DNA of 64,000 bases from the sequence record MK268344.1; one strand, 5' to 3'. Positions 44,767-64,000 of this stretch are shown here, piece after piece; positions within the stretch are counted from its first letter, which is position 1, and every line of letters begins with the position of its first letter. The position numbers were made by a program, and so were the translations under genes. The notes under the pieces are model-generated. The model did no database searches and was not told the DNA's origin. It was given only the letters and a program-made list of their open reading frames with translations.

Positions 44767-44777
44767 GGGGCTTTTTT
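44752..44777. terminator. bidirectional intrinsic terminator
   Basis: AAAAAGCCCC-GTTAA-GGGGCTTTTT at convergence of + and - blocks. Confidence 0.85.
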
Positions 44778-45423: not shown

Positions 45424-45496
45424 TTTATTTTCCTTAATTTTGCAGACATATATTTAATTAGAAAAATCCCCTAACTTTGACAGTACATGGATACAT

Positions 45497-46627: not shown

Positions 46628-46638
46628 TTTATTTCTCC

Positions 46639-47817
46639 TTACGTGTTCCACGGTAATTTTATTGGTGTGAATTTTGGATACAAAATAGTTGCTTCTAAAC
46701 CGGGTAAGTACTTACCTTGTCCAGCACCATAAACATTCCCATTAACATCACACAGTATTGTTGAATAATTTCCACATGCAGTTATTGTTTTTATTTCTGA
46801 ACCTTTTACTTGTACATCCCCTCCACCAAAAATAGTTGGTAGGTAATTAACAATAGTTGCCACAGTAGAACCAGTACCAGATGAATACGAACTCGCATTA
46901 TTATATCCATTAACCATCAATCTATCATAACCATCAACAATATATGTAAGAACATTAAATGTAGTGAATGATGATTTTGCAGGTAATGACAATGTATTAG
47001 TAACTAATGTTGGTTTTTGAACCGGGGCAGGTGAAGCAGTACTTCCCGGTGTTGCAGTACTATAATAATTTGTACCCCATGAATATACATTACCATCAAT
47101 TGTGATACATTTATAGGATAATGCATCGCTTGATAACGATTTACACTTTTGATTATTTGGTAACACCAATCTTGTAAATGATAAAAGTGTAACCCCGTTA
47201 TTGGCAATGCCAGAATTATTATCATTTCCACATCGGTATAGTTCTCCGGTTTTAGTAAGGAGCCATGTTGCAATATTTCCATTAACATCAAGTACTTCCT
47301 CTATTGGCCCACCAGTATGCTGTAACATAGTCCATGTTAATGGTGCGGTACTTAATCCAAATGATGGATAATTAGTTGGACTAATTACTTTTACAACCCC
47401 AGAACTATCAATTTTATATAATCCATGTCTAGTAGTAAATAACTTATGAATATCATTGCCATCTGATAGCATTAGATCAGTGAAATCAGTAAATGTATTT
47501 GTATTCGATGCATTTGGTATAACAGACGCAATCCAACCCGTATAAAACCATTTTCCATCTACTGTTTTGATTATACATCCCGGAGTCATATCTTCTATCC
47601 AAAAGTCTTCTACGTCATCGCGAAGAATATGCCATCCATCTAAAAAATTATTAATGTCTTGACCATTGCCAAATTCACCATTACTACTTTCACCGAATGC
47701 ATATAATATATTATTATTATCTAACAGATAAAGTGCTTTTTGCCATCCTGCTATTTTCTTTACAAATTTGTTTTGTACGGTATTTCCATACGTTAATATC
47801 CTTGCGAATGGTATCAT
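46639..47817 (-). CDS. MIPF-array protein: RCC1-like beta-propeller
   Basis: MIPFARILTYGN; LYAFGESSNGEFG, VYSWGTN. Confidence 0.8.
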   Translation of the reverse strand: MIPFARILTYGNTVQNKFVKKIAGWQKALYLLDNNNILYAFGESSNGEFGNGQDINNFLDGWHILRDDVEDFWIEDMTPGCIIKTVDGKWFYTGWIASVIPNASNTNTFTDFTDLMLSDGNDIHKLFTTRHGLYKIDSSGVVKVISPTNYPSFGLSTAPLTWTMLQHTGGPIEEVLDVNGNIATWLLTKTGELYRCGNDNNSGIANNGVTLLSFTRLVLPNNQKCKSLSSDALSYKCITIDGNVYSWGTNYYSTATPGSTASPAPVQKPTLVTNTLSLPAKSSFTTFNVLTYIVDGYDRLMVNGYNNASSYSSGTGSTVATIVNYLPTIFGGGDVQVKGSEIKTITACGNYSTILCDVNGNVYGAGQGKYLPGLEATILYPKFTPIKLPWNT

Positions 47818-49010
47818 TTTATATCTCCTTGATTTACATTCAATCCATGTTTCATTGATTCTTTCGTTAAATCTTTTGGGAATTTACCAAATTTGTCTGA
47901 TATATTAGTATAAGTATCATATGTAATTATTTCTGTTTTAGTATTAAATCTACCACACATATATATTGAACCATCTTTCAAGTATACATAAGTTGCTGAG
48001 TTACCTAAATCAAGATACACAATATCATTAGTATTAAATGGAACTTGAACTTTTACTGGAGATACTCTAACGGTTCCATCATTTAATCCTCTAAATGAAG
48101 TATTTCCGGTAACATACATACCTTCATTTGTGTAATACATAGTTGTATTACAGTTTGAAAATGAATTATCAGCAAGACCTATAATACTGGTTCTCATAGG
48201 CCATGAATTACTTATTATAGTGGTTGATGTTAGATTATTAGTAGAACCATTACCAAATACACCATTAAAACCAAATCCTCTTCCATACCACGTTTTATCA
48301 ACATAAGAAGGAAAAATTATTGCATATTGATGATCCTGTAGTGATTTACCATATATCTCATCAGTACTAGCATTTCCAATTAATACTGGATATGAATAAA
48401 AAGTACTTTCAGGGGCTGATGAAAATATACTAGCTATATTTTGACCACCACCATGTACTTGACCCGATGTATTAATTGTCCACCAGTTTGTACCACTATT
48501 ACCTATAGCTATAATATTTGTACTTACTAAATTCCAATTTGTATATGGCACTGTACTAGAGTTTAAACCCCTTTGTGAACCAATCACTCTGAAAAAATTA
48601 TTATTATCTATGAAACCAATACTAGGGGAACCTGTATTAAATGAAACTGTATCAATAATAATAGAGCCTGAAGAAAAGAAAATATCTTCTTTGAAAGTTG
48701 TTTCCATTGTATTGTCATTACTAGTACGATAAAATCTAGAACCCGTATAATAGACTTTATTATTAGTTTCTTGAAGCATCAAAGAGTTCCCAAATTGATC
48801 CATCCAGAAATTTTTTACGTTATTTCTTATAAGTGTCCAATCTTCATGCCATACTTTTGCTTGACCATCACCAAAAGCACCATTGCCTCTACCATGCAAT
48901 TCCCCATTACTTAATAAAATCATCCAAGATGCTGTACTGAATTGTATTTTAACAATCTTAGAATCTTCCGCTATATTGCCATAATTTAACATTCTTGTGA
49001 ACGGTATCAT
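47814..49010 (-). CDS. MIPF-array protein: RCC1-like beta-propeller
   Basis: MIPFTRMLNYGN; GELHGRGNG, GRGFGFNGVFG. Confidence 0.8.
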   Translation of the reverse strand: MIPFTRMLNYGNIAEDSKIVKIQFSTASWMILLSNGELHGRGNGAFGDGQAKVWHEDWTLIRNNVKNFWMDQFGNSLMLQETNNKVYYTGSRFYRTSNDNTMETTFKEDIFFSSGSIIIDTVSFNTGSPSIGFIDNNNFFRVIGSQRGLNSSTVPYTNWNLVSTNIIAIGNSGTNWWTINTSGQVHGGGQNIASIFSSAPESTFYSYPVLIGNASTDEIYGKSLQDHQYAIIFPSYVDKTWYGRGFGFNGVFGNGSTNNLTSTTIISNSWPMRTSIIGLADNSFSNCNTTMYYTNEGMYVTGNTSFRGLNDGTVRVSPVKVQVPFNTNDIVYLDLGNSATYVYLKDGSIYMCGRFNTKTEIITYDTYTNISDKFGKFPKDLTKESMKHGLNVNQGDIK

Positions 49011-49020
49011 CCCCTTCTCC

Positions 49021-50187
49021 TTATATTATTCTTGGTTGCATTGGAACTTTATTCCATTTGGTAAAATCTTCAGTTGACCCCGGTATCCATCTTGAATTAC
49101 CCACTGCATATACCGTATTTTCATGCCAATAATACACGTAATAACCACCTTGAACAACATGTGTTGGATCGAAGATAATATCTTGAAGAAAACCATTTTG
49201 CACTAAGGTTGAATATATTATTGTTGATGTATTACCTATTCCAAATCTACCATAGTAATCAGAACCAGAACTATATATAGATTCTGAAGTACAAAGATAA
49301 ATTGCTCCTTCACTGCAAAAACTATTTGTGTACTGAACAAATTTACTGGCTAATTCAGAATCAATTAATGTATTTTTTGTTAGTGTCGTGTAATAAGAAG
49401 ATGCAGTAGTCCCATCAGCACATAAACCATTACCACGAAACCCGCTCATATATACATCATTGCTTTCTGTAATAATCAAGACATTATTAGCACTTAAAAT
49501 AATGGTTTTTATTGGCAATGTAAACGGTACTTTATAGAATATAGGTTGCTCACTTGAAAATCCTAGACCTAAAGTTCCATATAAATTTCTTCCAGTACCG
49601 AAAAGTTCACCTGATGTACTAATATAAAATGAGGCATCACTTGATGAACTTAATGAACTATAAATTTCTTTCACACCACTAGCTACATGTTTAAATGATG
49701 CTGAAGGTGTAGTACCTAAACCAATATTACCGTACTGATTATTTGATGCATATGTTCCTTGACCAATAGCATAAAGCTGTTCATCTTGTAATAAAAATAA
49801 TCCTCTACTTCCAAACATTAATTTGGCTTTGTTTAAATCAAAGTTATTGAAAGTTGATGTTATTTCAGTAAATGTATTTAAATATCCAGATGATGCTCCC
49901 AATGATGCTCGATAACCAGTAAAAAACACTTTATTATTTTCAGTAATAATTAAAGTACAGTCAACACCAACATATATATCTTTTATATTTTCGATTGGAC
50001 ATTTTACCCATGTATTTTTGTTTACTAATGTTCCATCACCTAATTGACCACTTGTATTATCACCAGTACCAAATGCTTGACCATCATCAAATAGTACAAA
50101 AATAAATCCATAATACGAAACAACTTTTTTAATTTTAGTTTTTGGTAAAATATTACCATATGATATAATTCTTGGAAACGGAATCAT
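49021..50187 (-). CDS. MIPF-array protein: RCC1-like beta-propeller
   Basis: MIPFPRIISYGN; GTGDNTSGQLG, GTGRNLYGTLG. Confidence 0.82.
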   Translation of the reverse strand: MIPFPRIISYGNILPKTKIKKVVSYYGFIFVLFDDGQAFGTGDNTSGQLGDGTLVNKNTWVKCPIENIKDIYVGVDCTLIITENNKVFFTGYRASLGASSGYLNTFTEITSTFNNFDLNKAKLMFGSRGLFLLQDEQLYAIGQGTYASNNQYGNIGLGTTPSASFKHVASGVKEIYSSLSSSSDASFYISTSGELFGTGRNLYGTLGLGFSSEQPIFYKVPFTLPIKTIILSANNVLIITESNDVYMSGFRGNGLCADGTTASSYYTTLTKNTLIDSELASKFVQYTNSFCSEGAIYLCTSESIYSSGSDYYGRFGIGNTSTIIYSTLVQNGFLQDIIFDPTHVVQGGYYVYYWHENTVYAVGNSRWIPGSTEDFTKWNKVPMQPRII

Positions 50188-51341
50188 TTTATCTCCTTAA
50201 ATGTAGTACCCGGTGGGAATGATAATTCTTTAAATTGTACAGTTGCTGGAGTACTAGGATAACCAACAACAAAACGTTGTTGTCCACAAAAGAACATTTT
50301 ATTCTCATCGTACCATATACTTGATTCATTTCCAAAGTATCCTTTTACTTTAGAAGGATTTAACCCACTATTTCCTAGATTAGTTGTCCACAACCCAAGA
50401 TTATCATCATCTGTACCAGCCCCCATATAAGTAAGATTACCACTGAAGTATATAGTAGGATTATCACTATCTTTATTCATTGATACAAACGCATTAAATG
50501 TATTATTACTTGTACCCAAAATATAGCTATTATCAGGAGTAACCTTAGTAATATTTGGAAGAGGAATAAAGGTGTTACTTGAACTACCTCTACCGGTTGC
50601 CTGAGCACCAGTACTATATATAGTACCATCACTTAATACAATCCAAGTACTATTATTAGCGGAAGAAACACCATCAACTTTATCAAAATTATAAATGGAA
50701 TTTATGTTTGTCCAAGTATTAGACTGTGTTGTTCCATTATATCCAAGAGAACCTCCTTGATTCCATCCAGTACCAAATAAGATACCATTATTATCAATAT
50801 AAAAGGAATTATTACTACTTGATGTAACATACTTTACATTTGATGCGAGCTTTATGTAAGTGCGATGATCTGTTGTATTACCAGTACCTAATACTCCACG
50901 ACTGTTAGTATATGCTAAACCATATAAGTCATCATCTTCAGTAATTCCGAAAACAGTATTATTAGTTATACTGAATTTGACTATTGGCTTATTTCCACCA
51001 ACACCAATTAGATTTGTAATATCAACTGGTTCCTGTGTACCCCTTGTGTTACCAGTAAAAGCTATATCTCCTGCACCATAAATCGTATCACCTTTTCTAT
51101 AAGCAATACCACTATTCCATGAATCTATGATATCAGTAACTCCAGTATCAACCACTACATAAGATTTAACAGCAGAAGTTGAACCATCCCTACTGATTTG
51201 TCCATAACGATTGTATCCAGCACCCCAAAGTGTTCCGTCATACCATAAAATATAGGTGTCTAATGCGTGAGAAATTTTTCGAACTGCGGTAGGCTTTACA
51301 GCTTCATTTCCATATTTCATAATTCTTGCAAATGGTATCAT
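50184..51341 (-). CDS. MIPF-array protein: RCC1-like beta-propeller
   Basis: MIPFARIMKYGN; WGAGYNRYGQI, FGTGWNQGGSLG. Confidence 0.82.
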   Translation of the reverse strand: MIPFARIMKYGNEAVKPTAVRKISHALDTYILWYDGTLWGAGYNRYGQISRDGSTSAVKSYVVVDTGVTDIIDSWNSGIAYRKGDTIYGAGDIAFTGNTRGTQEPVDITNLIGVGGNKPIVKFSITNNTVFGITEDDDLYGLAYTNSRGVLGTGNTTDHRTYIKLASNVKYVTSSSNNSFYIDNNGILFGTGWNQGGSLGYNGTTQSNTWTNINSIYNFDKVDGVSSANNSTWIVLSDGTIYSTGAQATGRGSSSNTFIPLPNITKVTPDNSYILGTSNNTFNAFVSMNKDSDNPTIYFSGNLTYMGAGTDDDNLGLWTTNLGNSGLNPSKVKGYFGNESSIWYDENKMFFCGQQRFVVGYPSTPATVQFKELSFPPGTTFKEIK

Positions 51342-52039
51342 ATTTGAACCTCCCTCATCTTAATATATTGTATCCTACCTTTGAATAAAACCGGATTAGC
51401 ATTATTATCACCATCAACATATGAACCAAATAAACTAAAATACTGATTAACAGGAGATAATATTTGATACCACGGAAATGTTTGTGTTTCATTAAAAAGT
51501 TCAGAATGTACTGTAATAGAAATACCTTTTCTAAATTCCATTTTTATGGTATCCCAAGCATTGGGGTTAGCCCATGTAGGAAGTACTCTGGCATAATTAT
51601 TTCCCCAATCTATGAATACTTGATTATATGTAGAACTATATTGGTTGAATGCATTAACAAAACCCGATATTCTTCTGGAATTATAATTACCAGTTTCAAA
51701 TAACGCTTGTCCTCCGATTGGTGAACATTTCATTCTATATTCTATGTCAAATGCATTATATAGACTGAAGTCCAATTTGGTTCCTTTTACCGGATTTAAA
51801 GTTCTAAAATAAGCACTACTATTTGTACAATCTAATACATTAGACCCAATTTCATCATCATATACCACAGTTCCTGCGACGGGATTAATTGTACCGATTT
51901 GTGAACGTTGTAAAAATTGATTACCTGCTCTATCAGGAACGCCCGTACTACCAATTTCTTGAGTACTGTAATCTACATCAAGTATCATTTTTTCAGGAGC
52001 GATATTCCCGTATGTTAATATCTTTGAAAAAGGTATCAT
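51338..52039 (-). CDS. MIPF-array protein: LamG/lectin-like beta-sandwich
   Basis: MIPFSKILTYGN; FDIEYRMK...LFETG...WDTIKMEF...FKGRIQYIKM. Confidence 0.7.
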   Translation of the reverse strand: MIPFSKILTYGNIAPEKMILDVDYSTQEIGSTGVPDRAGNQFLQRSQIGTINPVAGTVVYDDEIGSNVLDCTNSSAYFRTLNPVKGTKLDFSLYNAFDIEYRMKCSPIGGQALFETGNYNSRRISGFVNAFNQYSSTYNQVFIDWGNNYARVLPTWANPNAWDTIKMEFRKGISITVHSELFNETQTFPWYQILSPVNQYFSLFGSYVDGDNNANPVLFKGRIQYIKMREVQI

Positions 52040-52110
52040 ATATCCCCCATAATTCTTGTAATTATACTATATTTAATTAAAAAAGGCCAGTACTAGTATT
52101 GTACTGGCCT
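52032..52110 (-). repeat. cassette junction repeat type A (terminator + TAAATA + RBS + start); copies at 57716-57792 and 61268-61342
   Basis: GGTATCATATATCCCCCATAATT..TGTAATTATACTATATTTAATTAAAAAAGGC.AGTAC nearly identical at three junctions. Confidence 0.85.
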
Positions 52111-52115
52111 TTTTA

Positions 52116-53237
52116 TTATTTCCAAGGCATTTTTTCATCGGCAAGTCGAGTAAGCCTATTGTAAAATGAAATTCCATTTATTGGTGTATTACCACATACA
52201 AACATATCATCGTTATTATCAATAACCATTGAAAATAAATTATCACCACCAAAGGATACAATATTAGATACTGTACCAAATATCATTGGTGTAAGTGTAG
52301 CTTGTGCTGACGAAGCTGCACCATTACCACATTGTCCATATATATTAAATCCACAACGCCATATTTGATTGTTAATCCATATCATCGGTGACATACCCGC
52401 ACTATTTGATAAAGAACCAATTACTCTTAATGGTACAGAAGGATCAAATTGAGTACGGATCTGTACTGAATTAAGTACTGGATTCGTATTACCAACAGAA
52501 CCTTGACCTTGCGTGTTAATTGATGCAGTTCGTATAGAACCATCTTTCATAAAATAATATGTTGTATAAAATGTATTAGCAGTGTACAATACATCATCCA
52601 ATGTTTTTGTAAATGTAGGTACTGAGGTTGGCGTAGTACCAGATAACATCATCGTTCCTGCATAATAACAGCTTCCATCACTTAATATTAAACAGGTTGT
52701 ATTAAATCCACAGGACATGTACTGAACGTTTTCGATTGAACTATATGTGAATTTAGTAACACTAGCAGAACTACCAGTACCGAAACACCCCGCACTATTG
52801 CTTCCATAAAAGAACCATTTTCCATTATTCAATAATACTCTAATACCTTCAGCAATGTAAACACTTTTTATATCATCTGGCGATACCCCAAAATCTGAAA
52901 AGTACTTCGTTACATTAACAAAGGATCTTGTATTTTGTGCTATTGGCATACCATATGTACTTCCAGTGTACCACATTATATTATCTTCATCTATAGCCAG
53001 TGTTCCATGTACACCACCGAAATATCTTTTCACTCTGGTTAATACCTTAGTCCACGATGATAGGTTCGTTGTATCACCAGTTCCTAATTGACCCAAGTTA
53101 TTCTGTCCAATTGCATATAGATCACCATTACGGTGTAAATACCATGCTGCACTGTAATTTACCTGAACTCGTTCACCCAATATAGTCGGTGCTTTAACTT
53201 CATTGCCATAACTTAATATTCTTGTAAATGGTATCAT
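52116..53237 (-). CDS. MIPF-array protein: RCC1-like beta-propeller
   Basis: MIPFTRILSYGN; LYAIGQNNLGQLGTG, CGFNIYGQCG. Confidence 0.82.
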   Translation of the reverse strand: MIPFTRILSYGNEVKAPTILGERVQVNYSAAWYLHRNGDLYAIGQNNLGQLGTGDTTNLSSWTKVLTRVKRYFGGVHGTLAIDEDNIMWYTGSTYGMPIAQNTRSFVNVTKYFSDFGVSPDDIKSVYIAEGIRVLLNNGKWFFYGSNSAGCFGTGSSASVTKFTYSSIENVQYMSCGFNTTCLILSDGSCYYAGTMMLSGTTPTSVPTFTKTLDDVLYTANTFYTTYYFMKDGSIRTASINTQGQGSVGNTNPVLNSVQIRTQFDPSVPLRVIGSLSNSAGMSPMIWINNQIWRCGFNIYGQCGNGAASSAQATLTPMIFGTVSNIVSFGGDNLFSMVIDNNDDMFVCGNTPINGISFYNRLTRLADEKMPWK

Positions 53238-53259
53238 TATTATTCCTCGATTATTTTAA

Positions 53260-54429
53260 TTACATTGGCAATACCAACGGAAGTACTGAACCAATACCAT
53301 ATGTTGGAACATTACTTTGTATTGTTGGTGCTGTATTTTTTGGTGAAGATGTGGCTATATTAGGAAAAGATGAAGATGGATTAAACAATACTATATTACC
53401 AGAACCACTCATAAGCATCAACCCATCGTATTTCTCATTTTGTGCACATTTCTCGAATGTTCCAATGTCAACTGTAGAATTCACATAGTTTTTACTTCTA
53501 TGTCCACAACCATATATTTCATTATCAACTGTCATGTAATATGATACGCTTCCTGAACTCGTATTAATAAATTTAAAATAGCTACGGAAATTAGCTGGTA
53601 GAATTGGTAATGTTCCTGATACGAATCCATAAAACCCACTATTAGTATTACCATTACCCAACGAACCATATGATCCCCATCCAGTTCCGTAATATGTCCC
53701 ATCAGATAAAAAAATTATACAATTGTTATTGCACATTTTAATTTGATTGATTTTTTGAACATCCACACCCGGAAATGATTCAGTAAATGTTAATACATTA
53801 GAAACACTACTTGCATTACATTGGTTTTGTGTATTACGTCCAGATGATAGTACTGTGCCATCTTCTAAGATAATTCTTGCTGCTCCAGTACCAGACATAC
53901 ATGCTACCGCATTTGATGAATTAAACAATTTCTTTAACGAAAAAAAACCAACATTGGCTTTCCCTTGACCTGACCAACCTTCTGTATCAGTACCAATACC
54001 CCACACCGAACCATCATTATGAATAAGCATAAGACCATTTCTATCAATATTAATGTATTTTATCTCATTAATATCTATTCCGACAAAACTAGATGTAACG
54101 TCAATCCATGTATTCGAAACTGTTACAGAACTTTTCAATACGTTGTGACCAGTTAACATAACTTTACCAGTACTTGTAATATATATTGTTTGTGAAAAAC
54201 CAGTACTACATAACCTAACTTCATCAACTTCGGGAACCATAATCCACTCATTAAATGAATTTGTGTTATTTCCAGTACCCAATTGACCATTGGCATTACT
54301 ACCAGACAAATATAACTTTTCATTGTAAATCAATGAATACGTTTCACTATATTCTGAAGTACTCAATAAAATTGATTTTGGTATTGGTGGGGTATTTCCA
54401 TATAACATGATTCTAGCAAATGGTATCAT
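53260..54429 (-). CDS. MIPF-array protein: RCC1-like beta-propeller
   Basis: MIPFARIMLYGN; SGSNANGQLGTG, SGRNTQNQC. Confidence 0.82.
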   Translation of the reverse strand: MIPFARIMLYGNTPPIPKSILLSTSEYSETYSLIYNEKLYLSGSNANGQLGTGNNTNSFNEWIMVPEVDEVRLCSTGFSQTIYITSTGKVMLTGHNVLKSSVTVSNTWIDVTSSFVGIDINEIKYINIDRNGLMLIHNDGSVWGIGTDTEGWSGQGKANVGFFSLKKLFNSSNAVACMSGTGAARIILEDGTVLSSGRNTQNQCNASSVSNVLTFTESFPGVDVQKINQIKMCNNNCIIFLSDGTYYGTGWGSYGSLGNGNTNSGFYGFVSGTLPILPANFRSYFKFINTSSGSVSYYMTVDNEIYGCGHRSKNYVNSTVDIGTFEKCAQNEKYDGLMLMSGSGNIVLFNPSSSFPNIATSSPKNTAPTIQSNVPTYGIGSVLPLVLPM

Positions 54430-54472
54430 ACATTCTCCTTATTTGTACAATTATATTATATTTAATTAAAAA
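54413..54472 (-). repeat. 60-bp exact direct repeat (cassette junction type B), second copy 55682-55741
   Basis: CTAGCAAATGGTATCATACATTCTCCTTATTTGTACAATTATATTATATTTAATTAAAAA identical in both. Confidence 0.9.
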
Positions 54473-54513
54473 AAGGCCAATACTGTATCAGTACTAACCG
54501 ACATTTAATTTAA

Positions 54514-55698
54514 CTATAATTTCCACGGCAATTGCATTAGAGATTGAAAATATCCATTAAAAATATCATTTGTTAAACAAGTTGGGTTCGTGTTTTTCCC
54601 GCAGCCCAAAATAATATTTTCATCCCTGCATATATATCCATTATAATAATTACATATAATAATATCATGTTCTTTGCAAATTATATCAGGAACTATAGTG
54701 TATGTACCTATATATTGGGGTGATGTTCCTAAACCCAACGCATAATTATAATTATTTCCAGTACTATATAATCTATTATTAATATCAACATACATGGAAA
54801 CGCCACTATGCATTGTATATACTTTACCAAAATAATTATAATCATTACATGAATTCGGTAATTCCACGGTGATCATATTACCTGATGTATTTTGATTCGT
54901 ATTCGTTGTATTTCCATCACCGAATGCCCCGGCTGAATTCGTACCAATACAATATGCTGTTGACTTAGTATACGCAATCGTATTGTTAGTAGACATCCTA
55001 ACCTGAAGTATAGGTTCACTTACAGTACTAAACATTCGATGAAAACGAACAATATTCTCATTATTAATGCCACCCTCAGTACTGGTTTTTATACAATATG
55101 ATGCATTCCTGCCAGCACCCCACACTGTCCCGTCTTTTTTAATATATACACTATTTTGTGAAGTAATAGAACAATCTTCAACATCAGTATCTATCAATGT
55201 CAATGGGAAATATCCAGTACTACCAACACCTAATTCACCATAACGATTAAGTCCAATACCATAAAGTTCACCATTGTTTAATAATACAAATGTATTATTC
55301 TCAGGAACTATTTTTTTAATATCTGATATATTAATAGAACTAAACAAGTTAGAGATATCAGTAAATGTCGTATACCCTGATGCTGTACCACTGTTATTCT
55401 GAATTGCTCGATCGCCTGATAAAAATATTTTATCATCATGCGAAATATATATAGTACTTCCAATCCCATTAGTACATAACTTAATATCCGATTCTGGTAT
55501 TTTAAATAAAGATCTAGGTCTATCTGATTTATGACCCAACCCCAATTGACCATATGCGTTATACCCACCAACATAGGCATCGCCGGTGCTTAATAAAATA
55601 CTATAAGAAACATTAGAACTAAAACTTAAATTCATTTGTTTGATATATGGTATTTCTCTTATATTACCGTATGTCAATATCCTAGCAAATGGTATCAT
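54514..55698 (-). CDS. MIPF-array protein: RCC1-like beta-propeller
   Basis: MIPFARILTYGN; GGYNAYGQLGLG, GLNRYGELG. Confidence 0.82.
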   Translation of the reverse strand: MIPFARILTYGNIREIPYIKQMNLSFSSNVSYSILLSTGDAYVGGYNAYGQLGLGHKSDRPRSLFKIPESDIKLCTNGIGSTIYISHDDKIFLSGDRAIQNNSGTASGYTTFTDISNLFSSINISDIKKIVPENNTFVLLNNGELYGIGLNRYGELGVGSTGYFPLTLIDTDVEDCSITSQNSVYIKKDGTVWGAGRNASYCIKTSTEGGINNENIVRFHRMFSTVSEPILQVRMSTNNTIAYTKSTAYCIGTNSAGAFGDGNTTNTNQNTSGNMITVELPNSCNDYNYFGKVYTMHSGVSMYVDINNRLYSTGNNYNYALGLGTSPQYIGTYTIVPDIICKEHDIIICNYYNGYICRDENIILGCGKNTNPTCLTNDIFNGYFQSLMQLPWKL

Positions 55699-55775
55699 AC
55701 ATTCTCCTTATTTGTACAATTATATTATATTTAATTAAAAATGACAGTACTACATAAGTACTGTCATTTTTCTTA

Positions 55776-56579
55776 TTATGTAGTTGTGCCTACATTACTT
55801 GTGGGAAATCTACGACCACCTCCCCAAATAATACGCACACCACCCAATCCTTCATCAGTACTTGTATTACCAGCACCACGATATATGGTTGTACCCGGAA
55901 CCGCACTACCTGAACTACCACGATAATGTGCAGCAGAACCACGTCCAGATTCACCCATACCAAATAAACCAACTGCACCACCAGAAGCAGCTATTCCGCC
56001 CCCTCCTCCACCACCACCAGCACCAGAACTGCCAGATGAACTACTTGCACCATTACCACCATTACCTTCATAGCCACCAGCACCACCTGAGCCGCCTCTT
56101 TCATATCGATAAGTACCAGAAGTCGGGCCACTACCACCTCTACCACCATCGCCGCCGCCATCGTTTATTTGACTGGCATTCTTTCCACCAACACCTCCTG
56201 ACCCACCGGCACCACTAGACATTGTAGTACCATAACTGCCCATTTTTCCACCACCAGCAATGCAAGCATTTGAGTTATTTTGTAATACATAAGAATTTCC
56301 ACCATCAGAATTGGCTGTATAACCATTTACACCAACTGTAACTGATAGTACTTCACCGGGAGTTACCGCTACATCATTCCTATAACTTAAACCACCACCA
56401 CCGCCACCACCCCCAGTACTTCCAGTGCCAACCCTACCACCACCGCCAACACATAATATACATATAGATTCAACATCATCTGGTACTATAAACTCAAATG
56501 TTCCAGATTGAACCCAGACCATTTCCCCTTTTGGTGGTAATTTATTTCCGTATGTTAGCATTTTTGTAAATGGTATCAC
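55776..56579 (-). CDS. MIPF-array protein: glycine-rich tail-fibre-like domain
   Basis: GTG start, MIPFTKMLTYGN; SGTFEFIVP...VGGGG...VTPGEVLSVTVG...GGGG...GGVRIIW. Confidence 0.8.
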   Translation of the reverse strand: MIPFTKMLTYGNKLPPKGEMVWVQSGTFEFIVPDDVESICILCVGGGGRVGTGSTGGGGGGGGLSYRNDVAVTPGEVLSVTVGVNGYTANSDGGNSYVLQNNSNACIAGGGKMGSYGTTMSSGAGGSGGVGGKNASQINDGGGDGGRGGSGPTSGTYRYERGGSGGAGGYEGNGGNGASSSSGSSGAGGGGGGGGIAASGGAVGLFGMGESGRGSAAHYRGSSGSAVPGTTIYRGAGNTSTDEGLGGVRIIWGGGRRFPTSNVGTTT

Positions 56580-56589
56580 GATTGTCTCC

Positions 56590-57723
56590 TTAATTAATTC
56601 TTATTTTAGTAAAAATATTATTTTCTGAACCATCAGATTTTTTTCCCGGTAAAACACTAATACTTCCAACTCCCCAAATATCATTTCCATCAAATATTAA
56701 AGAATAAAAAGTTCCACCCAAAATCTGTACTTTTTTGTTATCTTGTACTGTTGTAAATTTAGGAATTTCTTTAAAAATAGAGGATGCCTGTGGTAAGCCA
56801 CTATATTCAACTAGACCCGTTGCATAAAATGTACCGTTAGTACCTAAAAATATATTTCTGTTTGGTGTACCCTTTAACTTTCCTCCAATAACCATTTGGG
56901 ATGGCATGTTTATTTTGGTTGACCAAGATTTAAGCTGAGTATTTAAATTTACACCGTCACCTAATATCCCATTAATTTGCCAACCAGAACCTGCTATTGT
57001 CGTTGGTGTCCAATATGATAATGTACTAGCACGTGTTGCCATAAAGGATGATGTGCCACCATTAAGTATTATCCCCCACGTATACTTATTTTCTGAATTA
57101 CCAGAACCAAATTGACCATAAGGCTGTTGTCCCGCTCCATACAAATATACGGAAGTGGGTGAAATTCCACGAGCTATCATAGAATAGTCTCCAACATATA
57201 ATTCTTGATGGTAAGTAGTACCAACTCGCGTAAATGAACTTATCCGATTTGTAGATCCTAGACCACACGCCCCATTACTATTCCAACCTCTTGAATATAA
57301 TTGATTGTCGATATCAATATATCCCATAGTGTATAAACCAATATCTAATTCTTTCACCGAATCATAAGATGGCATAGTATTAGTTATATCATCACCTTCT
57401 ATTGGAGATAATCCACCAGTAGTATTCTTGGTTCCTAATACATCATAGTTTCCATTAAAAATCCATTTTCCATCCTTAGTATATATTAATGTACTCTTAG
57501 AACCACACCAAACATCTTCTGCATTTCTATCCAGTACTACAAACTCGTAGTACTGATATGTTGCTGTGCAATCCTTTAACTGATTAGAATTGTTATAACC
57601 AATACCATATAGTAATCCACTTTCCATTAATACCACATAATGTGTATCACCACATGATATTTTCTTTATATTACTTGGTACAACTACATTACCATATCCC
57701 AATATCCTCGCAAATGGTATCAT
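56590..57723 (-). CDS. MIPF-array protein: RCC1-like beta-propeller
   Basis: MIPFARILGYGN; ISCGDTHYVVL, RGWNSNGACGLG. Confidence 0.82.
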   Translation of the reverse strand: MIPFARILGYGNVVVPSNIKKISCGDTHYVVLMESGLLYGIGYNNSNQLKDCTATYQYYEFVVLDRNAEDVWCGSKSTLIYTKDGKWIFNGNYDVLGTKNTTGGLSPIEGDDITNTMPSYDSVKELDIGLYTMGYIDIDNQLYSRGWNSNGACGLGSTNRISSFTRVGTTYHQELYVGDYSMIARGISPTSVYLYGAGQQPYGQFGSGNSENKYTWGIILNGGTSSFMATRASTLSYWTPTTIAGSGWQINGILGDGVNLNTQLKSWSTKINMPSQMVIGGKLKGTPNRNIFLGTNGTFYATGLVEYSGLPQASSIFKEIPKFTTVQDNKKVQILGGTFYSLIFDGNDIWGVGSISVLPGKKSDGSENNIFTKIRIN

Positions 57724-57797
57724 ATATCCCCCATAATTCATGTAATTATACTATATTTAATTAAAAAAGGCTAGTACGCACTTGTACTAGCCATCTC

Positions 57798-58943
57798 TCA
57801 ATTAATAGATTTAATATCAACTTCTGCACCCAATGACAATTTAGTAAAGGTAGTTGTATCTTGACTTAAGGAAGGAAAAGAAGAACCACTATACCAAATT
57901 GTATTTCTAGTTATTATCATAGTATTAGTTGAATTAGCACATATTCCAATTATATCATTAAGTACTAACTCATCTGGTAAATTAATAATTGTCTTATTTT
58001 GGGGCGTAACCTTATTACCTAAACCCAATTGTCCACTTGTATTATTTCCAGTACAATATAAATCATTATTCACACTAAAAAATGTACCATAACGTGTTAA
58101 TATAGAATATGGATGATTGAAAAACTTATTAGCACCAACCATACTATACAAACTCGTAATACCAATTTGGGCTGTACTTCCATTACCCATGCAATAATAA
58201 GTACCTAATCCCGCTCCATATATCCAACTTTGATTAATAGACATAACCGCCGATGGCATTAAACTCCATGAAATGTTAGAAGTTCTAGGAGCAGAAGCAA
58301 CTTGTACTTCATTCGGCGTAGGTGATGTTCCAAGCATCGATGGTGCATTACCAAAACCACAGATAACATCATATGCACTGAACCATTTTCGATAAGCCGT
58401 TATGCCATTATAAAGCTGTACATCTTTAACCCTAGAAACCATTAAAGTAGGTACTGATAACATTCCATTTAAGGCAACCTTATTACTTAAACTATAAGTA
58501 CTATTCCTACCAACCATATATAAATCACCATATGTGCGATCAGTCGAATTCGGTATTAAATAAGCCATGTTGTTTAAAGTAGCTGTAATGTTATAAGCAT
58601 CACTAGGAATAGTAAAGGGAAGTTTGGTAAAACTATATACATTACTATTAAGCCCTAAACATGTGCGGTTGCCAGATATATAGTACTGACCATCATTTCC
58701 TTGAATGATCACACTCATATCAGTAGCACATACCACTTTTTTAATATTACCTGCAATCAATCTCCATTCAGATAATGGTGCAGAATCACCAGTACCCAAT
58801 TGACCCTGACTATTATCCCCTAATGCAAATAAATTACCAATAGAATCTATATATAATGCAAAATAATTCAATCCACAGAATTGAACTATTTTTGCATCCG
58901 GTAATGTGTTCCCATAATCCAATATCCTAGCAAACGGTATCAT
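57798..58943 (-). CDS. MIPF-array protein: RCC1-like beta-propeller
   Basis: MIPFARILDYGN; LGDNSQGQLGTG, TGNNTSGQLGLG. Confidence 0.82.
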   Translation of the reverse strand: MIPFARILDYGNTLPDAKIVQFCGLNYFALYIDSIGNLFALGDNSQGQLGTGDSAPLSEWRLIAGNIKKVVCATDMSVIIQGNDGQYYISGNRTCLGLNSNVYSFTKLPFTIPSDAYNITATLNNMAYLIPNSTDRTYGDLYMVGRNSTYSLSNKVALNGMLSVPTLMVSRVKDVQLYNGITAYRKWFSAYDVICGFGNAPSMLGTSPTPNEVQVASAPRTSNISWSLMPSAVMSINQSWIYGAGLGTYYCMGNGSTAQIGITSLYSMVGANKFFNHPYSILTRYGTFFSVNNDLYCTGNNTSGQLGLGNKVTPQNKTIINLPDELVLNDIIGICANSTNTMIITRNTIWYSGSSFPSLSQDTTTFTKLSLGAEVDIKSIN

Positions 58944-60136
58944 ATCTCATCCTCCGGTCTAAATCCAGTTGGTCGTACAAAAAAGTATTGGGCTGTTGTA
59001 TATCCCGGTATCGTATAATTAGAACTATCTCCCGCTGCCAAAAAATTATTTCCGTAAGAATAATATAATGCATTACGATTATAATTAATTAGTTCAGCAG
59101 AAGGTTCAATACCACTCCAATAAAAATATCTTTGATATGTATTATTACCCACACCAAAAGCTCCACTAGCATTACTAGCACTGAAATAATACCCATAAGC
59201 AGCACCACTGCTCTTATCAATACGTTGCATTAGTATCGCCGGGTACATTGGATCACCACTACCACCAAACATTTTACCTTTATATTCCAAATCAAATCCA
59301 GAATCATCACGCATTATAACTTCAGAAAAGGTAAGTACCGAACCATCAGCAGATGCGTTTTTATTAAATGCACCACCACCTGCACCACATGCATATAACT
59401 TGTTAGTACTAGGTGAATATAACACTGCTCCCGTTCTACATACCGCAAATACATCATCAAAGGATGTGTATAAATCTGAAACTCCAGCAGGTAGTACTAT
59501 CGGCTTAGGTAGTGTGATTGTAGATGTATTCTGGGAAACTCCTATGTAAGAACCGTTACCCGCTGCATATATTTTCGAATCACCTCTAATAACAAATAAA
59601 CAATTGTTATCATTATTCACAAAATCTACAACATCTCGGTATATTAGTGTGAATTTATTATAAGTCGTCGATGTAGAAGGTGCTAATAATTGTCCATTAC
59701 TATTCATCCCAATAGCATACAAATCACCACTCGTACTTAAAATGTATATAGCTCTCCATGCTACCTGTACTTTCTTTATTTTATCCAATGCAATAACATC
59801 AGTAATTAATGAAGTTATATCTAAATTGGTAAATGTTATATTACCACTAATCCCAAGAGTCCCACTAAAACCACTATAGACGTATTTTTCCGCTTTGGTT
59901 TTATAAAGGGAACCCCATCCACCTAACCAACAATCATCTACATCAGTAGCCATCAACGCTTTTCCATCCCTGCCACTGATTACCTCACCATATGCAGGCA
60001 AACCAAATGAATATAAATTCCCACTCCCACCTAAAACCATAGTACTGCTATAATTGCAACAAATTTTTTTGTACTTACTTACGTCTGGCTCAGGTGCAAT
60101 ATTCCCATAACTCAATATCCTTGCAAATGGTATCAT
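58940..60136 (-). CDS. MIPF-array protein: RCC1-like beta-propeller
   Basis: MIPFARILSYGN; LYAIGMNSNGQL; GGGAGG RBS fixes start. Confidence 0.8.
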   Translation of the reverse strand: MIPFARILSYGNIAPEPDVSKYKKICCNYSSTMVLGGSGNLYSFGLPAYGEVISGRDGKALMATDVDDCWLGGWGSLYKTKAEKYVYSGFSGTLGISGNITFTNLDITSLITDVIALDKIKKVQVAWRAIYILSTSGDLYAIGMNSNGQLLAPSTSTTYNKFTLIYRDVVDFVNNDNNCLFVIRGDSKIYAAGNGSYIGVSQNTSTITLPKPIVLPAGVSDLYTSFDDVFAVCRTGAVLYSPSTNKLYACGAGGGAFNKNASADGSVLTFSEVIMRDDSGFDLEYKGKMFGGSGDPMYPAILMQRIDKSSGAAYGYYFSASNASGAFGVGNNTYQRYFYWSGIEPSAELINYNRNALYYSYGNNFLAAGDSSNYTIPGYTTAQYFFVRPTGFRPEDEI

Positions 60137-61275
60137 ATTTCCTCCCACGGTAATTTAACTTTCTTATACTCAATCGTTTCATTTATACTTCCATCACCTA
60201 ATATCCATCTACCATCACCTGATTGATACATCTCTTCATCTGTATATAAACAAGATGTAAGATTCGATGAAGATAACCCAATGACCTTAGAAAAATCAAT
60301 ATTCAACGTACATTTCGTAAATCTTCCAATGCCAGTTTCACCACCATATGCAGTACCAAAAATTCCCGTTTTATATCCAGTACTGTATACTCCAGTATCA
60401 CTAACAAAAGCCATATTAAATATACCATTTCCTCGATGGATTGGCCTTAAATTACTCGTATCACCACTATAGGACACAATCTGATAATATAATTGATTCA
60501 CGTGCGTTGTACTTACATTACCATTACCTAATTGACCATATATCTGATTACCAGCCGATGAAAGAGATTTGTTGATATTAAAATACATACTTGAACTATA
60601 ACCAGTTCCAACCATCAATGCATTCTGTGTGAAAAACATTGGGCTTCTAATTGCATTATTATTACCTAATCCAAATTCACCATTAGCATTTCTACCCCAT
60701 ACGTACATATCACCATTGTTGCATAACGCAACTGCACTTCCCGCCGCTGTTGTATATTGAATGTAATTAACGTCAGTTATTCCCTGAACCTCGGTCAGTA
60801 CTGATAACGAACCAGAACCAGATATTCCACTATTCACATTACTATTTGAACCAATTGCATATATATTTCCATTAATATCTTTAAAATGTAACATCTGTTG
60901 ATGACAAAATACGTCAACAATAGTAGAAGGATCAATAGAACCAAATTCAAATAACATTCTTACCCAACTACTAGCAGTATCATTTATACCACCTAATCCT
61001 GTATACCAAAAAGTACCATCACTCTTCTTGATTAAGGTATAATTCCCATATACCCATACATCAAAAACATTTGTCATGATCTCAACACTTCTTCCATAAT
61101 ATGATACATTAGTATTAGTAAAACCTAATTGATTATAATTGTTAGTTCCACATCCCCATAATACACCTTTACTATCCAGTATTACAAAATGAGTACTGCC
61201 AAATTGTGCTTTTTTTATAGTTCTCTTAAACGAAACAATGTTCCCATAATCCAATATCCTCGTAAATGGTATCAT
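60133..61275 (-). CDS. MIPF-array protein: RCC1-like beta-propeller
   Basis: MIPFTRILDYGN; VWGRNANGEFGLG, AGNQIYGQLG. Confidence 0.82.
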   Translation of the reverse strand: MIPFTRILDYGNIVSFKRTIKKAQFGSTHFVILDSKGVLWGCGTNNYNQLGFTNTNVSYYGRSVEIMTNVFDVWVYGNYTLIKKSDGTFWYTGLGGINDTASSWVRMLFEFGSIDPSTIVDVFCHQQMLHFKDINGNIYAIGSNSNVNSGISGSGSLSVLTEVQGITDVNYIQYTTAAGSAVALCNNGDMYVWGRNANGEFGLGNNNAIRSPMFFTQNALMVGTGYSSSMYFNINKSLSSAGNQIYGQLGNGNVSTTHVNQLYYQIVSYSGDTSNLRPIHRGNGIFNMAFVSDTGVYSTGYKTGIFGTAYGGETGIGRFTKCTLNIDFSKVIGLSSSNLTSCLYTDEEMYQSGDGRWILGDGSINETIEYKKVKLPWEEI

Positions 61276-61348
61276 ATATCCCCCATAATCTCTTATTATA
61301 ATATATTTAACCAAAAAAGGCCAGTACTATCACTGTACTGACCTAACT

Positions 61349-62473
61349 TTAGTTTGTTGGTAAAATCATCGGCCTTAATGCCGCTGTATCATCTTTTCCC
61401 GGTAAAAATTGTAAATTAGCACCAGATATATAAAATCCAGTACTGTTCTTATATACATAATGATTAAATCCACCCTGTACCTTATCAAATATTTCACTAT
61501 ACATAAATCTAAACGAATTAACTACACCCACTACACCATTTACATCAAACTGCTGACCTAATACATATAAACCACTCTGTAGACCCTGTACTTCCGGTGG
61601 TATAACAACAACTACTCCCCTTGTATTATATGAACATACCATATTACGTGCCGTAACTAAATCAGTACTAAAAGATAATATACGCTGAAAATCACTAATC
61701 GTACCATTCGGTGTATTACCTCGTATATATATACCATCCGTCCTTATCGCAATTACAACATAATCTCCACAATGGATATTTTGTGAAGTTAACGTGGCTT
61801 GAGTATATACATTATAAGTACTCGTCGAGGTATTCGCAACCTGCTTAAATGAATTATTACCAACAGCTAATATGTTAGAATTCACAGTAGTAATAAAACA
61901 ATTAAATGCACTCGCACTTATAGACATAATCGTTTTCGGAGCAGTACTACATAACGCTAAAGCATAGTGTGCAGGTGTATTATTTCCTTGCCCTAATGTC
62001 ACCCCTTTTCCCTGAGAGTATAAAGCACCATAATTAGAATCAGATATCCTTCCAACTAATACCATCATACTATTATCATTCACTTGTATGTCCTTTATGT
62101 AGCAATCAGCGTATTCATATATAGTACTAATATCCGGGATTATTAATGTGAATTTAGTATACGTCCCATTATCATTTCCTGTATATAAGGTATTCTTACC
62201 ACTTAAATATATCGAATTGCCTTTTCTTATTAATACCGCATATGATGCCATACCAGTGTAAACTTCATCAACTCCTGTATCACACCGAACCCATTCATTA
62301 CGGGTCTCTGTATCACCTAACCCCAATTGCCCCAATGCATTATCCCCTGTACTATAAAGAACTTTATCAGTACTTAATGCATAGAACGATTGTGAACCAA
62401 CATATGTCGAAATTATTGAGGATGGTAAGGGGGCTTTATTCCCGTAATCCAATATCCTAGCAAACGGTATCAT
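61349..62473 (-). CDS. MIPF-array protein: RCC1-like beta-propeller
   Basis: MIPFARILDYGN; STGDNALGQLGLG. Confidence 0.8.
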   Translation of the reverse strand: MIPFARILDYGNKAPLPSSIISTYVGSQSFYALSTDKVLYSTGDNALGQLGLGDTETRNEWVRCDTGVDEVYTGMASYAVLIRKGNSIYLSGKNTLYTGNDNGTYTKFTLIIPDISTIYEYADCYIKDIQVNDNSMMVLVGRISDSNYGALYSQGKGVTLGQGNNTPAHYALALCSTAPKTIMSISASAFNCFITTVNSNILAVGNNSFKQVANTSTSTYNVYTQATLTSQNIHCGDYVVIAIRTDGIYIRGNTPNGTISDFQRILSFSTDLVTARNMVCSYNTRGVVVVIPPEVQGLQSGLYVLGQQFDVNGVVGVVNSFRFMYSEIFDKVQGGFNHYVYKNSTGFYISGANLQFLPGKDDTAALRPMILPTN

Positions 62474-63669
62474 ATATTATCCTCTCTTAAATTAAAATCT
62501 GTTATTAATGTAAAATTCTCAGATAATGGTGTACTTAATGGCGTAAATCCAACACCAGCACTTGTTGTTAACCCCGAACCCTTTGCATATAGTAACGGGG
62601 ACATATTCAATGCACAAAGAGCAAACATCCTCGTATTTGTATAAGCCCTATATGTGTTCCCATTGCCCTGTACTGTATATCTTGGCGTGAATGTGAGAAG
62701 ACGATCTCCACCACCTCCATCCATATAACCCGCAAAATATAGTACACCATTAGTATCAGATAGGATATTCGTCCAATACGTCTGGATGGATGTCCCAAAT
62801 AGTGATAATAAATTACCCGGCTTAAATGCTAATTGTGCAGTATATAACCGAACATTCGCATCTACACTAATATTACCTATCCCCCACGCACCAGCATAAT
62901 TTCTTCCTGAACAATAATATTTTCCGTCCGTCCTAAAAAGCATAAAATGTGTTTGACTTATACGAAATGCATTATATTCATAATCTACCTCAGACGTAGC
63001 CTCAGAAAATAATTGTGTCCATGTAGTATATACAGTACTTTGAGATGTAGTCTGCATCTGTTGATAAGTGTTATCTCCAGTACCCCAAAATGTTCCATCC
63101 AAATCCTGATATACTCCATTAATATTCGTTATCCAACAATCCTGTACTGACGATTTTAATAGTACTGGCGTGAAACTAGGAGTTTTATTAGCACTACCAA
63201 AGTAACCATAATCGTTTTTTCCATGTGCATATAATGAACCATCATTCAACAAAATATAAACTGTGTTGTAATTCATTGTTATTTTCTTAATCTTTAATAT
63301 ATCAAAATACGTAGAATAAAATGAAGTCTTATCAACCCATGTGGCTGTATTACTAGTACCATCATATATCGTCTGACGACCTGTATAAAATAATTTATCA
63401 TCATTCGATAATACAAACGTTCCATATGTACTACCCCATGCAGTCTTTACATCCCTCTTAACTAAATGCATCTCACCATAGTAATTTACACCAACTGGAA
63501 AACCCAAAACATATCCATAATTCTTATCACAGGTTCCCCATAACTCTCCATTATTCAAATGCATCCACATCGTCGCTGCGGTATTATCCGAATCCAAAAA
63601 GAAGTCAATCACTTTTGCGGGTGCTGCTACCTTATTCCCATACTCTAATATCCTAGTAAATGGTATCAT
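62470..63669 (-). CDS. MIPF-array protein: RCC1-like beta-propeller
   Basis: MIPFTRILEYGN; HGKNDYGYFG, GTGDNTYQQM; TAAATA at 63699-63704. Confidence 0.8.
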   Translation of the reverse strand: MIPFTRILEYGNKVAAPAKVIDFFLDSDNTAATMWMHLNNGELWGTCDKNYGYVLGFPVGVNYYGEMHLVKRDVKTAWGSTYGTFVLSNDDKLFYTGRQTIYDGTSNTATWVDKTSFYSTYFDILKIKKITMNYNTVYILLNDGSLYAHGKNDYGYFGSANKTPSFTPVLLKSSVQDCWITNINGVYQDLDGTFWGTGDNTYQQMQTTSQSTVYTTWTQLFSEATSEVDYEYNAFRISQTHFMLFRTDGKYYCSGRNYAGAWGIGNISVDANVRLYTAQLAFKPGNLLSLFGTSIQTYWTNILSDTNGVLYFAGYMDGGGGDRLLTFTPRYTVQGNGNTYRAYTNTRMFALCALNMSPLLYAKGSGLTTSAGVGFTPLSTPLSENFTLITDFNLREDNI

Positions 63670-64000
63670 ATTATCCCCCTATAATTATCATTATATCATA
63701 TTTACCCATATATATACCCTTTTTAATATATTAGAAAACTCTATAGTACTACCATATATACACCATATAAACGCATAGAAAGCCATAAGAGAAGACTTCT
63801 CCAATATTATACACAGGTGTAGCTCCTGTAGATAGCGGCTCTTAGACGCTTATCGAAAGGATTCAACACCTGTAAAAATACCCAATTGTTAATATGTACA
63901 GTACTTTTACTTTTAAAATTATTCAGGAAATAGTTACACATTGAACTATATTAGTAAGTACTAATGGAAGCTACTATTCAGTACTTACCCCCTTCCGCTA

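Follow-up and report, generated by a model that had tools for sequence, protein, structure and literature searches.

In T4-type phages, modular shuffling is mediated by promoter-early stem-loops (PeSLs; Arbiol et al. 2010, PMC2839356; Comeau et al. 2014, PMC4122927). This is the closest known mechanism to what we describe here for the Salmonella jumbo phage Munch (MK268344, 350 kb). We analyzed a 64,000-nucleotide (nt) stretch at the right end of this record (hereafter the window), which matches Munch at 100% identity (compared over 51990–62475) and contains 17 consecutive tandem genes on the minus strand, Munch_534 to Munch_550 (g534 to g550), whose proteins all begin with the same 12-residue tag. 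Very likely, this is a tandem array of late, virion-associated binding-module genes that is shuffled by homology-driven, in-register exchange at the tags and at the junctions between genes. Like PeSLs, the array has composite terminator/promoter/Shine–Dalgarno units directly upstream of variable genes, the units are concentrated in a hyperplastic region, indels and replacements between close relatives are bounded by them (here mostly in the adjacent coding tag), and exchange would be driven by homology with no need for an integrase. The two systems differ in that the PeSL promoter is a strong sigma-70 early promoter (−35, −10, AT-rich upstream region) whereas the Munch one has a TAAATA late-type motif, and in that PeSL genes are ORFans whereas those of the array are virion-associated paralogues. 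Moreover, only five of the 17 Munch genes have a full unit; what recurs in every cassette is the coding tag, which also contains most of the crossovers.

Other described systems resemble the array in part. T4 internal-protein genes reportedly carry an N-terminal capsid targeting sequence, the proteins being packaged inside the capsid and the sequence removed; similarly, the array has a short conserved N-terminal peptide on unrelated payloads at a polymorphic locus, with shared 5' coding sequence that can recombine. However, this analogy fails on the cleavage motif, as no conserved Glu motif follows the Munch tag, and the payloads here are binding-type folds of 25–45 kDa. Tail-fibre and tailspike genes (CBA120, G7C-type branched spikes) combine a conserved N-terminal anchor with swapped C-terminal receptor-binding domains. 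The constant N-terminus for attachment, the variable binding domains and recombination at the conserved part recur here, but the anchor is only 12 residues long and predicted to be unstructured rather than a folded domain, and there are up to 17 tandem monocistronic copies in which no trimeric fibre features were seen. In gene accordions and in multigene families under concerted evolution, for instance in poxvirus K3L amplification, copy number likewise changes by recombination between tandem repeats that are partly homogenized; in the array, by contrast, the gene bodies are ancient (22–33% identical) and only about 45–120 nt per ~1.2-kb unit are homogenized. Integrons, too, are tandem arrays of promoter-proximal, interchangeable single-gene cassettes; they adjoin a tyrosine-recombinase integrase and an attI site, and have an attC site at each cassette boundary, where crossover takes place at a fixed position. 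The array is not an integron, because no IntI integrase is annotated, there is no attC and crossover positions vary; in addition, each operon head has its own promoter, and the hairpins, which occur at five boundaries only, are terminator-like.

The Munch array and its tag

The array comprises 14 genes for RCC1-like propellers (~375–400 residues), two for lectin-like proteins (g534 and g540) and one for a glycine-rich protein (g544), in a layout that reads as about seven operons (Table 1). All 17 proteins start with the pattern MIPF[ATSP][RK][IML][LIM]xY[GA]N. This pattern has 17 matches in the window, all inside the array, against 0.86 expected by chance; one further match with a single mismatch, at 14125, is antisense to an open reading frame (ORF). 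The ORF listing runs g535, g545, g547 and g548 upstream past the tag, and the tag ATG agrees with the record annotation.

Rearrangements among close relatives

We compared Munch with four deposited relatives, SE_PL, 7t3, fENko-Kae01 (Kae01) and PHA46, which are 98.6–99.9% identical to it over the array. SE_PL and 7t3 are missing g548. PHA46 is without g539–g540 and g547–g549; Kae01 is without g547–g549 and has no g539–g540 in place, and it carries a g540-like gene, 91.6% identical to g540, between g542 and g543. In the g548 deletion, the switch from g547 to g548 sequence occurs in a shared 9-nt core, TTCCCATAA, coding for Y-G-N. The Kae01 g547–g549 deletion falls inside an exact 31-mer, and a single switch explains 161 of 161 positions. 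For g539–g540, the switch lies near the start codon in Kae01 and near codon 14 in PHA46, the latter in register (offset 1852). The remaining joint, that of g547–g549 in PHA46, contains an extra ~70-nt tandem copy of tag and ribosome-binding site (RBS). This duplication (L004, about 18900–19040; window 58909–58954 / 62439–62500) consists of the first ~19 codons of g546 and the last 27 nt of g550, and leaves a tag-only stub between the two genes.

The relocated g540-like gene of Kae01 has one edge at the g542/g539 tag and the other at the promoter part of a junction, and has its own late-type promoter. Its divergence from g540 (L005, 14393–15181) exceeds that of its neighbours, which are 98–99% identical, and a 1-nt insertion near codon 107 breaks the frame into two annotated ORFs. 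It is probably a decaying copy.

All deletion products are intact genes of normal length with a chimeric tag. All mapped crossovers are in register and lie inside tags or junctions, most of them within the coding tag. They occur at five different positions relative to the ATG, all within about 100 nt around start codons, which amounts to roughly 9% of the array. As a control, the 24.9-kb flank at 19500–44400 is one collinear piece without indels in PHA46, 7t3 and SE_PL. Public sequencing runs independently gave the same two deletion joints: 58914>62445, where 31 letters are shared, in run X15, and that of g548 in run X12, whose right flank is only ~96% identical to Munch. The same divergent flank is present in run X10, in which g548 is kept. 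Since the g548 deletion stands on two different backgrounds, it has either recurred or been exchanged between lineages.

A model that saw only the DNA letters and their ORFs (the sequence-only reading) had proposed that conserved junctions reflect recombinational shuffling of the array. Our results support this proposal with refinements: neither gene order nor gene number is invariant, and crossovers fall at tags or junctions in four relatives and two public runs. The recombination was also described as ongoing, which stands for closely related isolates and not within one lysate. The 1269-nt unitig of the g543 cassette (window 54473–55741) is less deep than its flanks in runs X10 (89.5 versus 153.3) and X12 (404.5 versus 600.8), and has a depth of 353.5 against 379–455 in run X9; contig and unitig depth ratios are unreliable as evidence and give only a hint of a possible sub-population without g543. 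Recombination between adjacent PeSLs also releases circular mini-circles, and of a counterpart in Munch the lower depth in two runs would likewise be no more than a hint. Conversion tracts were also sought as mismatch density near the tags of SE_PL, PHA46 and Kae01, and this approach was rejected as the excess in these zones came almost entirely from the rearrangement joints.

Shared sequence at gene junctions

Consistent with the sequence-only reading, DNA identity is confined to the junctions. With the 17 genes anchored at the ATG and compared pairwise in 15-nt bins, identity is 0.85 (+0 to +14), 0.68 and 0.59 (+30 to +44), and falls to a background of ~0.30 beyond +45 and upstream of −45. 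The 60-bp exact repeat noted there is indeed present (54413–54472 = 55682–55741) and cannot be extended on either side. A ~60-bp junction had been called near-identical at three sites; the copies at 52032 and 57716 agree at 58 of 60 positions, whereas that at 61268 is looser because of a 2-nt indel (33 of 60 ungapped, 42 of 50 over the promoter/terminator half). The third repeat, given as 35 bp at 58911 and 62442, is a 58909/62439 pair matching at 43 of 46 positions and including the exact 31-mer 58915–58945 = 62445–62475; its second coordinate was off by 1.

The full junction unit is ~75 nt long and consists of a (C)CAGTAC...GTACTG(G) hairpin, a U-run, TTAAATAT-NN-TATAAT and an RBS. It lies upstream of g540, g542, g543, g545 and g548 only, where folding energies of the five hairpins range from −15.7 to −22.7 kcal/mol and each hairpin precedes a U-run. 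Partial units precede g550 (a promoter-like motif alone) and g534 (a weak version), and at the remaining 10 junctions the genes overlap or nearly abut (gaps ≤22 nt) without an intergenic unit. The junction described as typical, with an AGTAC-stem terminator, TTAATTAAATA and an RBS, is therefore real but was overstated. Likewise, a terminator–promoter–RBS–tag unit had been proposed as the cassette, and of this unit the tag is present in all 17 genes whereas the whole heads only five; it is the coding tag that all cassettes share.

The junction promoter motif is TAAATAT-NN-TATAAT, without a −35 element, and the promoter–ATG spacer has one sequence within each junction type but varies from type to type. 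A generic sigma-70 promoter scan showed no enrichment (106 found, 123.9 expected), leaving an early-promoter reading unsupported; with normal spacing, the scan matches one of six junction promoters. An ATAAATA late-type motif has been described upstream of structural genes in CBB and GAP32 (PMC5259590), and by analogy the junction promoter is likely to be late-type and the genes behind it to be expressed late.

Could function by itself account for the shared sequence? Under pure functional constraint, all copies would keep a common late promoter, RBS and targeting peptide, and the copy-number differences would be random deletions. We regard this as improbable. To represent constraint, we shuffled each alignment column among the copies (1000 shuffles), a null that keeps whatever all copies need in common. 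The longest in-register exact run under this null has a mean of 21.8, a 95th percentile of 26 and a maximum of 41, compared with observed runs of 60, 31 and 31 nt; moreover, runs of ≥20 nt occur in seven pairs, where the null predicts 1.7. Some gene pairs therefore share more sequence than common constraint explains. Further arguing against constraint, g540 (lectin-like) and g545 (RCC1) have unrelated payloads and yet share 58 of 60 nt of junction, including non-consensus spacer bases. The clustering of in-register crossovers around start codons and the indel-free flank described above argue in the same direction.

Concerted evolution of the tags

Arrays lie at the syntenic place in 121Q (Asteriusvirus) and Serratia phage BF (Eneladusvirus). 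While the bodies of the Munch paralogues share 22–33% amino-acid identity, several have closer matches in the other genera: g541/Q_28891 (40%), g540/BF_30045 (36%), g548/Q_21984 (35%), g549/BF_30755 (34%) and g545/Q_18323 (30%). The paralogues are thus older than the genera. Their tags, however, follow the genome, being MIPFARILxYGN in Munch, MLPFARMVKYGN in 121Q and MLPFPIISNT in most BF genes. Tag identity is 0.92 within 121Q and 0.77 within Munch, versus 0.70 between them, and the tag of Q_28891 is 94% identical to those of its 121Q paralogues versus 72% to that of its Munch orthologue g541. That the tags track the genome and not the orthologue amounts to concerted evolution.

Since tags that co-evolve with one partner could also come to resemble each other as proteins, synonymous sites have to decide. 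Where two copies share an amino acid, codon identity is 0.88 in the tag versus 0.45–0.47 in the body for 121Q, and 0.71 versus 0.48 for BF; the 121Q value is a further argument against constraint. Homogenization is thus almost complete in 121Q and patchy in Munch, where it involves g542/g543, g540/g545/g548 and g546/g549, including pairs with unrelated payloads. Synonymous tag identity above what protein constraint explains thus holds for 121Q and for particular Munch pairs, but is small across Munch as a whole.

Several observations weigh against exchange, and part of them favour constraint. Codon identity in Munch is only 0.58 in the tag versus 0.50 in the body, the value expected; the synonymous excess sits in codons 2–3, and the invariant Gly11 uses all four codons. 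The array-wide tag identity in Munch is therefore due mainly to selection on the peptide, perhaps also on the initiation region, and not to recent conversion. In addition, the 16-nt promoter core TTAAATATAGTATAAT is common to Munch and 121Q, and its conservation across genera shows that it is under functional constraint. As for the crossovers, deletions common to several genomes may be inherited rather than recurrent, and one crossover core is 9 nt, short for classical homologous recombination; microhomology-mediated template switching would fit this core equally well.

The array itself and the idea of tandem duplication have been published (PMC7247149, PMC5259590, PMC5646251); a shared tag on heterologous payloads, or breakpoints at the junctions of the array, had no prior description in the literature searched. 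If the duplications were recent, the identity could be residual, the bodies having diverged fast under diversifying selection and the junctions not yet. In line with this idea, tandem duplication was proposed in two of these reports (PMC7247149, PMC5646251), phAPEC6 has one recent cassette duplicate, and g542 and g543, the pair with the 60-nt repeat, are mutual best paralogues (29–30% amino-acid identity). Nevertheless, we consider residual identity quite unlikely. Body codon identity is at background (0.50), indicating that synonymous sites are saturated, yet 60 nt of junction are identical. The folds of g540 and g545 are unrelated, yet their junctions are near-identical. Finally, several Munch genes are closer to 121Q or BF genes (30–40%) than to their own paralogues, and still their tags follow the genome.

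Arrays in related phages and metagenomes

Nearly every 121Q gene has a junction to itself, in which ~100 nt spanning hairpin, promoter, RBS and tag hardly vary from copy to copy. A 118-nt probe made of the 121Q junction and tag has 1–13 copies per genome in 36 records. 121Q and phAPEC6 differ by the presence or absence of one cassette, by the replacement of another and by a third that phAPEC6 has twice (98.4–98.5% identity), with all block edges in junctions. The expansion, contraction and payload swapping predicted from the Munch letters are thus all seen. Directly beyond the RCC1 array and on the other strand, 121Q has a second, unrelated tandem array of ~180-nt genes (L006, 31359–34988), which probably corresponds to the one with more than 30 genes that Hua et al. 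mention (PMC5646251). Two types of tag occur in BF (L007, 28674–29831 and 30045–30710): most of its genes start with MLPFPIISNT and its g540 orthologue with MLPFARIVEYGN; one further gene carries MLPFPIMNKYGN, an apparent hybrid of both.

A scan of IMG/VR with the exact tag pattern returned 13 stretches, all on six contigs of 348–378 kb, and this degenerate-pattern scan showed no distribution beyond them. In this collection, all contigs with the tag are thus as large as jumbo phages. On one metagenomic contig, L008, there are ten tagged genes, among them one for a Kelch propeller, two for LamG proteins, two of the g540 type and one of an unknown type. A blastn search with a 61-nt tag probe proved too insensitive, as it found 4 places in Munch versus the 17 known.

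Assembly artefacts and site-specific recombination

Short-read assemblers could in principle have collapsed or skipped cassettes at the repeats. Indeed, unitig graphs break at the 31-mer and 60-mer repeats (run X9; 1269-nt unitig), and one PHA46 joint contains the odd 70-nt duplication. An artefact is nonetheless very unlikely, because the repeats (9–60 nt) are far below sequencing-read length, the same joints occur across laboratories and countries and in contigs of independent runs, the joints all leave intact in-frame genes, and the relocated g540-like copy of Kae01, 8% diverged and frameshifted, is a real separate sequence.

Least probable is a site-specific, integron-like system in which a recombinase or homing nuclease acts at the hairpin or junction: Munch and 121Q have a conserved (C)CAGTAC...GTACTG(G) stem, and of its six exact matches in the window the array holds four, three of them at junction terminators and one within g545 (the others are at 32630 and 33323), but most crossovers fall in the coding tag, away from a hairpin that only five genes have, and no integrase or recombinase is annotated in the array or within 9–12 kb of it in five genomes. 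To the extent that annotation tells, the latter is also consistent with the claim that the cassettes are integrase-independent.

Proposed mechanism of shuffling

We propose that shuffling of the array relies on two kinds of short direct repeat spaced one gene apart, a tag-coding repeat of 36–45 nt in all 17 genes and the ~75-nt unit at operon heads. In-register, homology-driven exchange between these repeats would delete, duplicate, relocate or replace whole cassettes, and the same exchange would copy junction sequence from gene to gene. With crossovers placed within the shared tag or immediately upstream of it, every product would be an intact, expressed tag–payload gene. No dedicated recombinase would be needed; phage recombination or template switching during replication would probably supply the enzymology. 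As a result of such exchange, the array would expand, contract and change payloads fast relative to neighbouring DNA. A giant phage could in this way keep a large and fast-changing set of accessory virion proteins, whose short peptide-coding repeat would give them a function in common and, at the same time, an in-frame site for crossover. The modular shuffling of regulatory cassettes known from T4-type early regions would thereby extend to late structural genes of 121Q/Rak2-like jumbo phages and to coding homology. Copy-number differences among near-identical phages that are candidates for therapy may accordingly be real and may bear on adsorption.

Tag and payload proteins

RCC1 and/or RCC1_2 scored above the Pfam curated cut-off in all seven RCC1-type genes scanned, and WD40_RLD matches remained below their cut-off of 150. 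The AlphaFold2 model of g549 is all-beta and propeller-like with a moderate predicted local distance difference test score (pLDDT) of 69, and that of g540 is a lectin-type jelly roll (pLDDT 87). The best solved matches of the g540 model are lectin-like subdomains of clostridial neurotoxin binding domains and of NTNHA, with template-modelling scores of about 0.55–0.6 and ≤16% identity; the modelled likeness would thus be one of fold only. Propellers, lectin-type jelly rolls and glycine-rich domains are typical binding modules. Although 14 array genes are annotated as 'DNA condensation protein' in the record, they owe this name, which is in wide use for these genes, to eukaryotic RCC1; nothing found here supports it, or DNA binding.

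Several lines of evidence suggest that the array proteins are late-expressed and virion-associated. The virion proteome of phAPEC6 includes six 'DNA condensation' (RCC1-like) proteins (PMC7247149, Table 1) as well as two ~41-kDa proteins without a name, whose gene numbers fall among theirs (PMC7247149). GAP32 gp1 is a structural protein verified by mass spectrometry (PMC5259590), and the Kae01 record notes detection of the g544 homologue (ENKO_525c) by liquid chromatography–tandem mass spectrometry. One Kae01 proteomics supplement file searched for array locus tags contained none, so that the ENKO_525c record note was the only usable item. Phages of this group bear unusual hair-like fibres on head and tail (PMC7247149).

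In the models, tag residues 1–14 of g540 and 1–13 of g549 have pLDDT < 50 and are unpacked against the domain, which fits a free N-terminal peptide that would belong to neither fold. The idea that the tag is a 'velcro' strand of the propeller was rejected, given this low confidence in both models and the presence of the tag on non-propeller payloads. Its payloads range over RCC1, LamG, g540-type jelly-roll and glycine-rich domains, with Kelch added in contig L008. There is no prohead-protease site (L/I-x-E, with cleavage after the Glu) at the tag end, as no conserved Glu occurs in residues 1–16 of the 17 genes; position 9 of the tag is T/N/S/K/L/G/D/E, with Glu in one gene.

The tag would most plausibly serve as a docking or packaging peptide for the virion. 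We tentatively go one step further, to a possibility we rate somewhat below even: the tag may be a generic virion-incorporation handle for one shared site, its coding sequence doubling as a recombination site, and the array a natural plug-and-play display system. If so, any binding module recombined behind the tag would gain late expression and mounting on or in the particle, and, by gaining, losing and exchanging cassettes, the clade would tune its surface repertoire with no need for a recombinase of its own. Should the tag suffice for incorporation, it would be a very small handle for protein display on these phages.

Feature table and setting of the array

Table 1 Features of the Munch array, in window coordinates.
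Feature	Position	Strand	Basis or remark
Whole array, Munch_534 to Munch_550, 17 tagged genes	44776..63669	-	ORFs, record annotation, tag pattern
g534, 215 aa, tag + Laminin_G_3 (ConA-like lectin) payload	44776..45423	-	Pfam PF13385, E 6e-9
Partial junction upstream of g534: TTAAATA + weak hairpin	45424..45496	-	fold z +0.2
g535–g539, five tagged RCC1-like propeller genes, tightly packed or overlapping, without intergenic promoter or terminator	45497..51341	-	
Starts of g535–g539	46627, 47817, 49010, 50187, 51341	-	
g540, 233 aa, tag + lectin-like jelly-roll payload	51338..52039	-	phrog_6011 'virion structural protein', PHROG E 1e-36; ConA-like fold matches of the model
Full junction unit upstream of g540: terminator hairpin, U-run, TTAAATATAGTATAAT, RBS	52040..52115	-	hairpin −22.7 kcal/mol, z −5.1
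g541 and g542, tagged RCC1-like genes	52116..54429	-	Pfam
Exact 60-nt repeat, copy 1: g542 codons 1–6, RBS, promoter	54413..54472	-	
Full junction unit upstream of g542	54430..54513	-	
g543, tagged RCC1-like, bracketed by the exact 60-nt repeat (spacing 1269)	54514..55698	-	
Exact 60-nt repeat, copy 2: g543 codons 1–6, RBS, promoter	55682..55741	-	
Full junction unit upstream of g543	55699..55775	-	hairpin −19.2 kcal/mol, z −4.7
g544, 267 aa, GTG start (the only one in the array), tag + glycine-rich payload	55776..56579	-	Pfam Gly_rich_2
g545, tagged RCC1-like gene	56590..57723	-	
Full junction unit upstream of g545	57724..57797	-	57716–57775 vs 52032–52091 = 58/60
g546, tagged RCC1-like gene	57798..58943	-	Pfam
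Exact 31-mer in g546 tag; crossover segment of the g547–g549 deletion	58915..58945	-	partner 62445–62475
g547, tagged RCC1-like; absent from Kae01, PHA46 and run X15	58940..60136	-	
Left crossover core TTCCCATAA of the g548 deletion, codons Y-G-N of g547 tag	60102..60110	-	SE_PL, 7t3
g548, tagged RCC1-like; absent from SE_PL, 7t3 and run X12	60133..61275	-	
Right crossover core TTCCCATAA of the g548 deletion, in g548 tag	61241..61249	-	
Full junction unit upstream of g548, GGTTAAATA variant	61276..61348	-	
g549, tagged RCC1-like gene	61349..62473	-	Pfam, AlphaFold2 propeller model
Exact 31-mer in g549 tag	62445..62475	-	partner 58915–58945
g550, tagged RCC1-like, first gene of the array	62470..63669	-	Pfam
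Array-head promoter-like motif TAAATATGATATAAT + RBS upstream of g550	63670..63704	-	

In Kae01, a 19.7-kb direct terminal repeat begins about 330 nt past the first gene of the array (L005, 21172 onward), so that the array borders on this repeat at the margin of the unique region. Fourteen public DNA runs carry 28–100% of the words sampled from window positions 57700–63690. Their contigs total 5–6 million letters in thirteen runs and 15 million in one, about the size of bacterial isolates; the phage or close relatives are thus present at high depth in apparent isolate sequencing projects.

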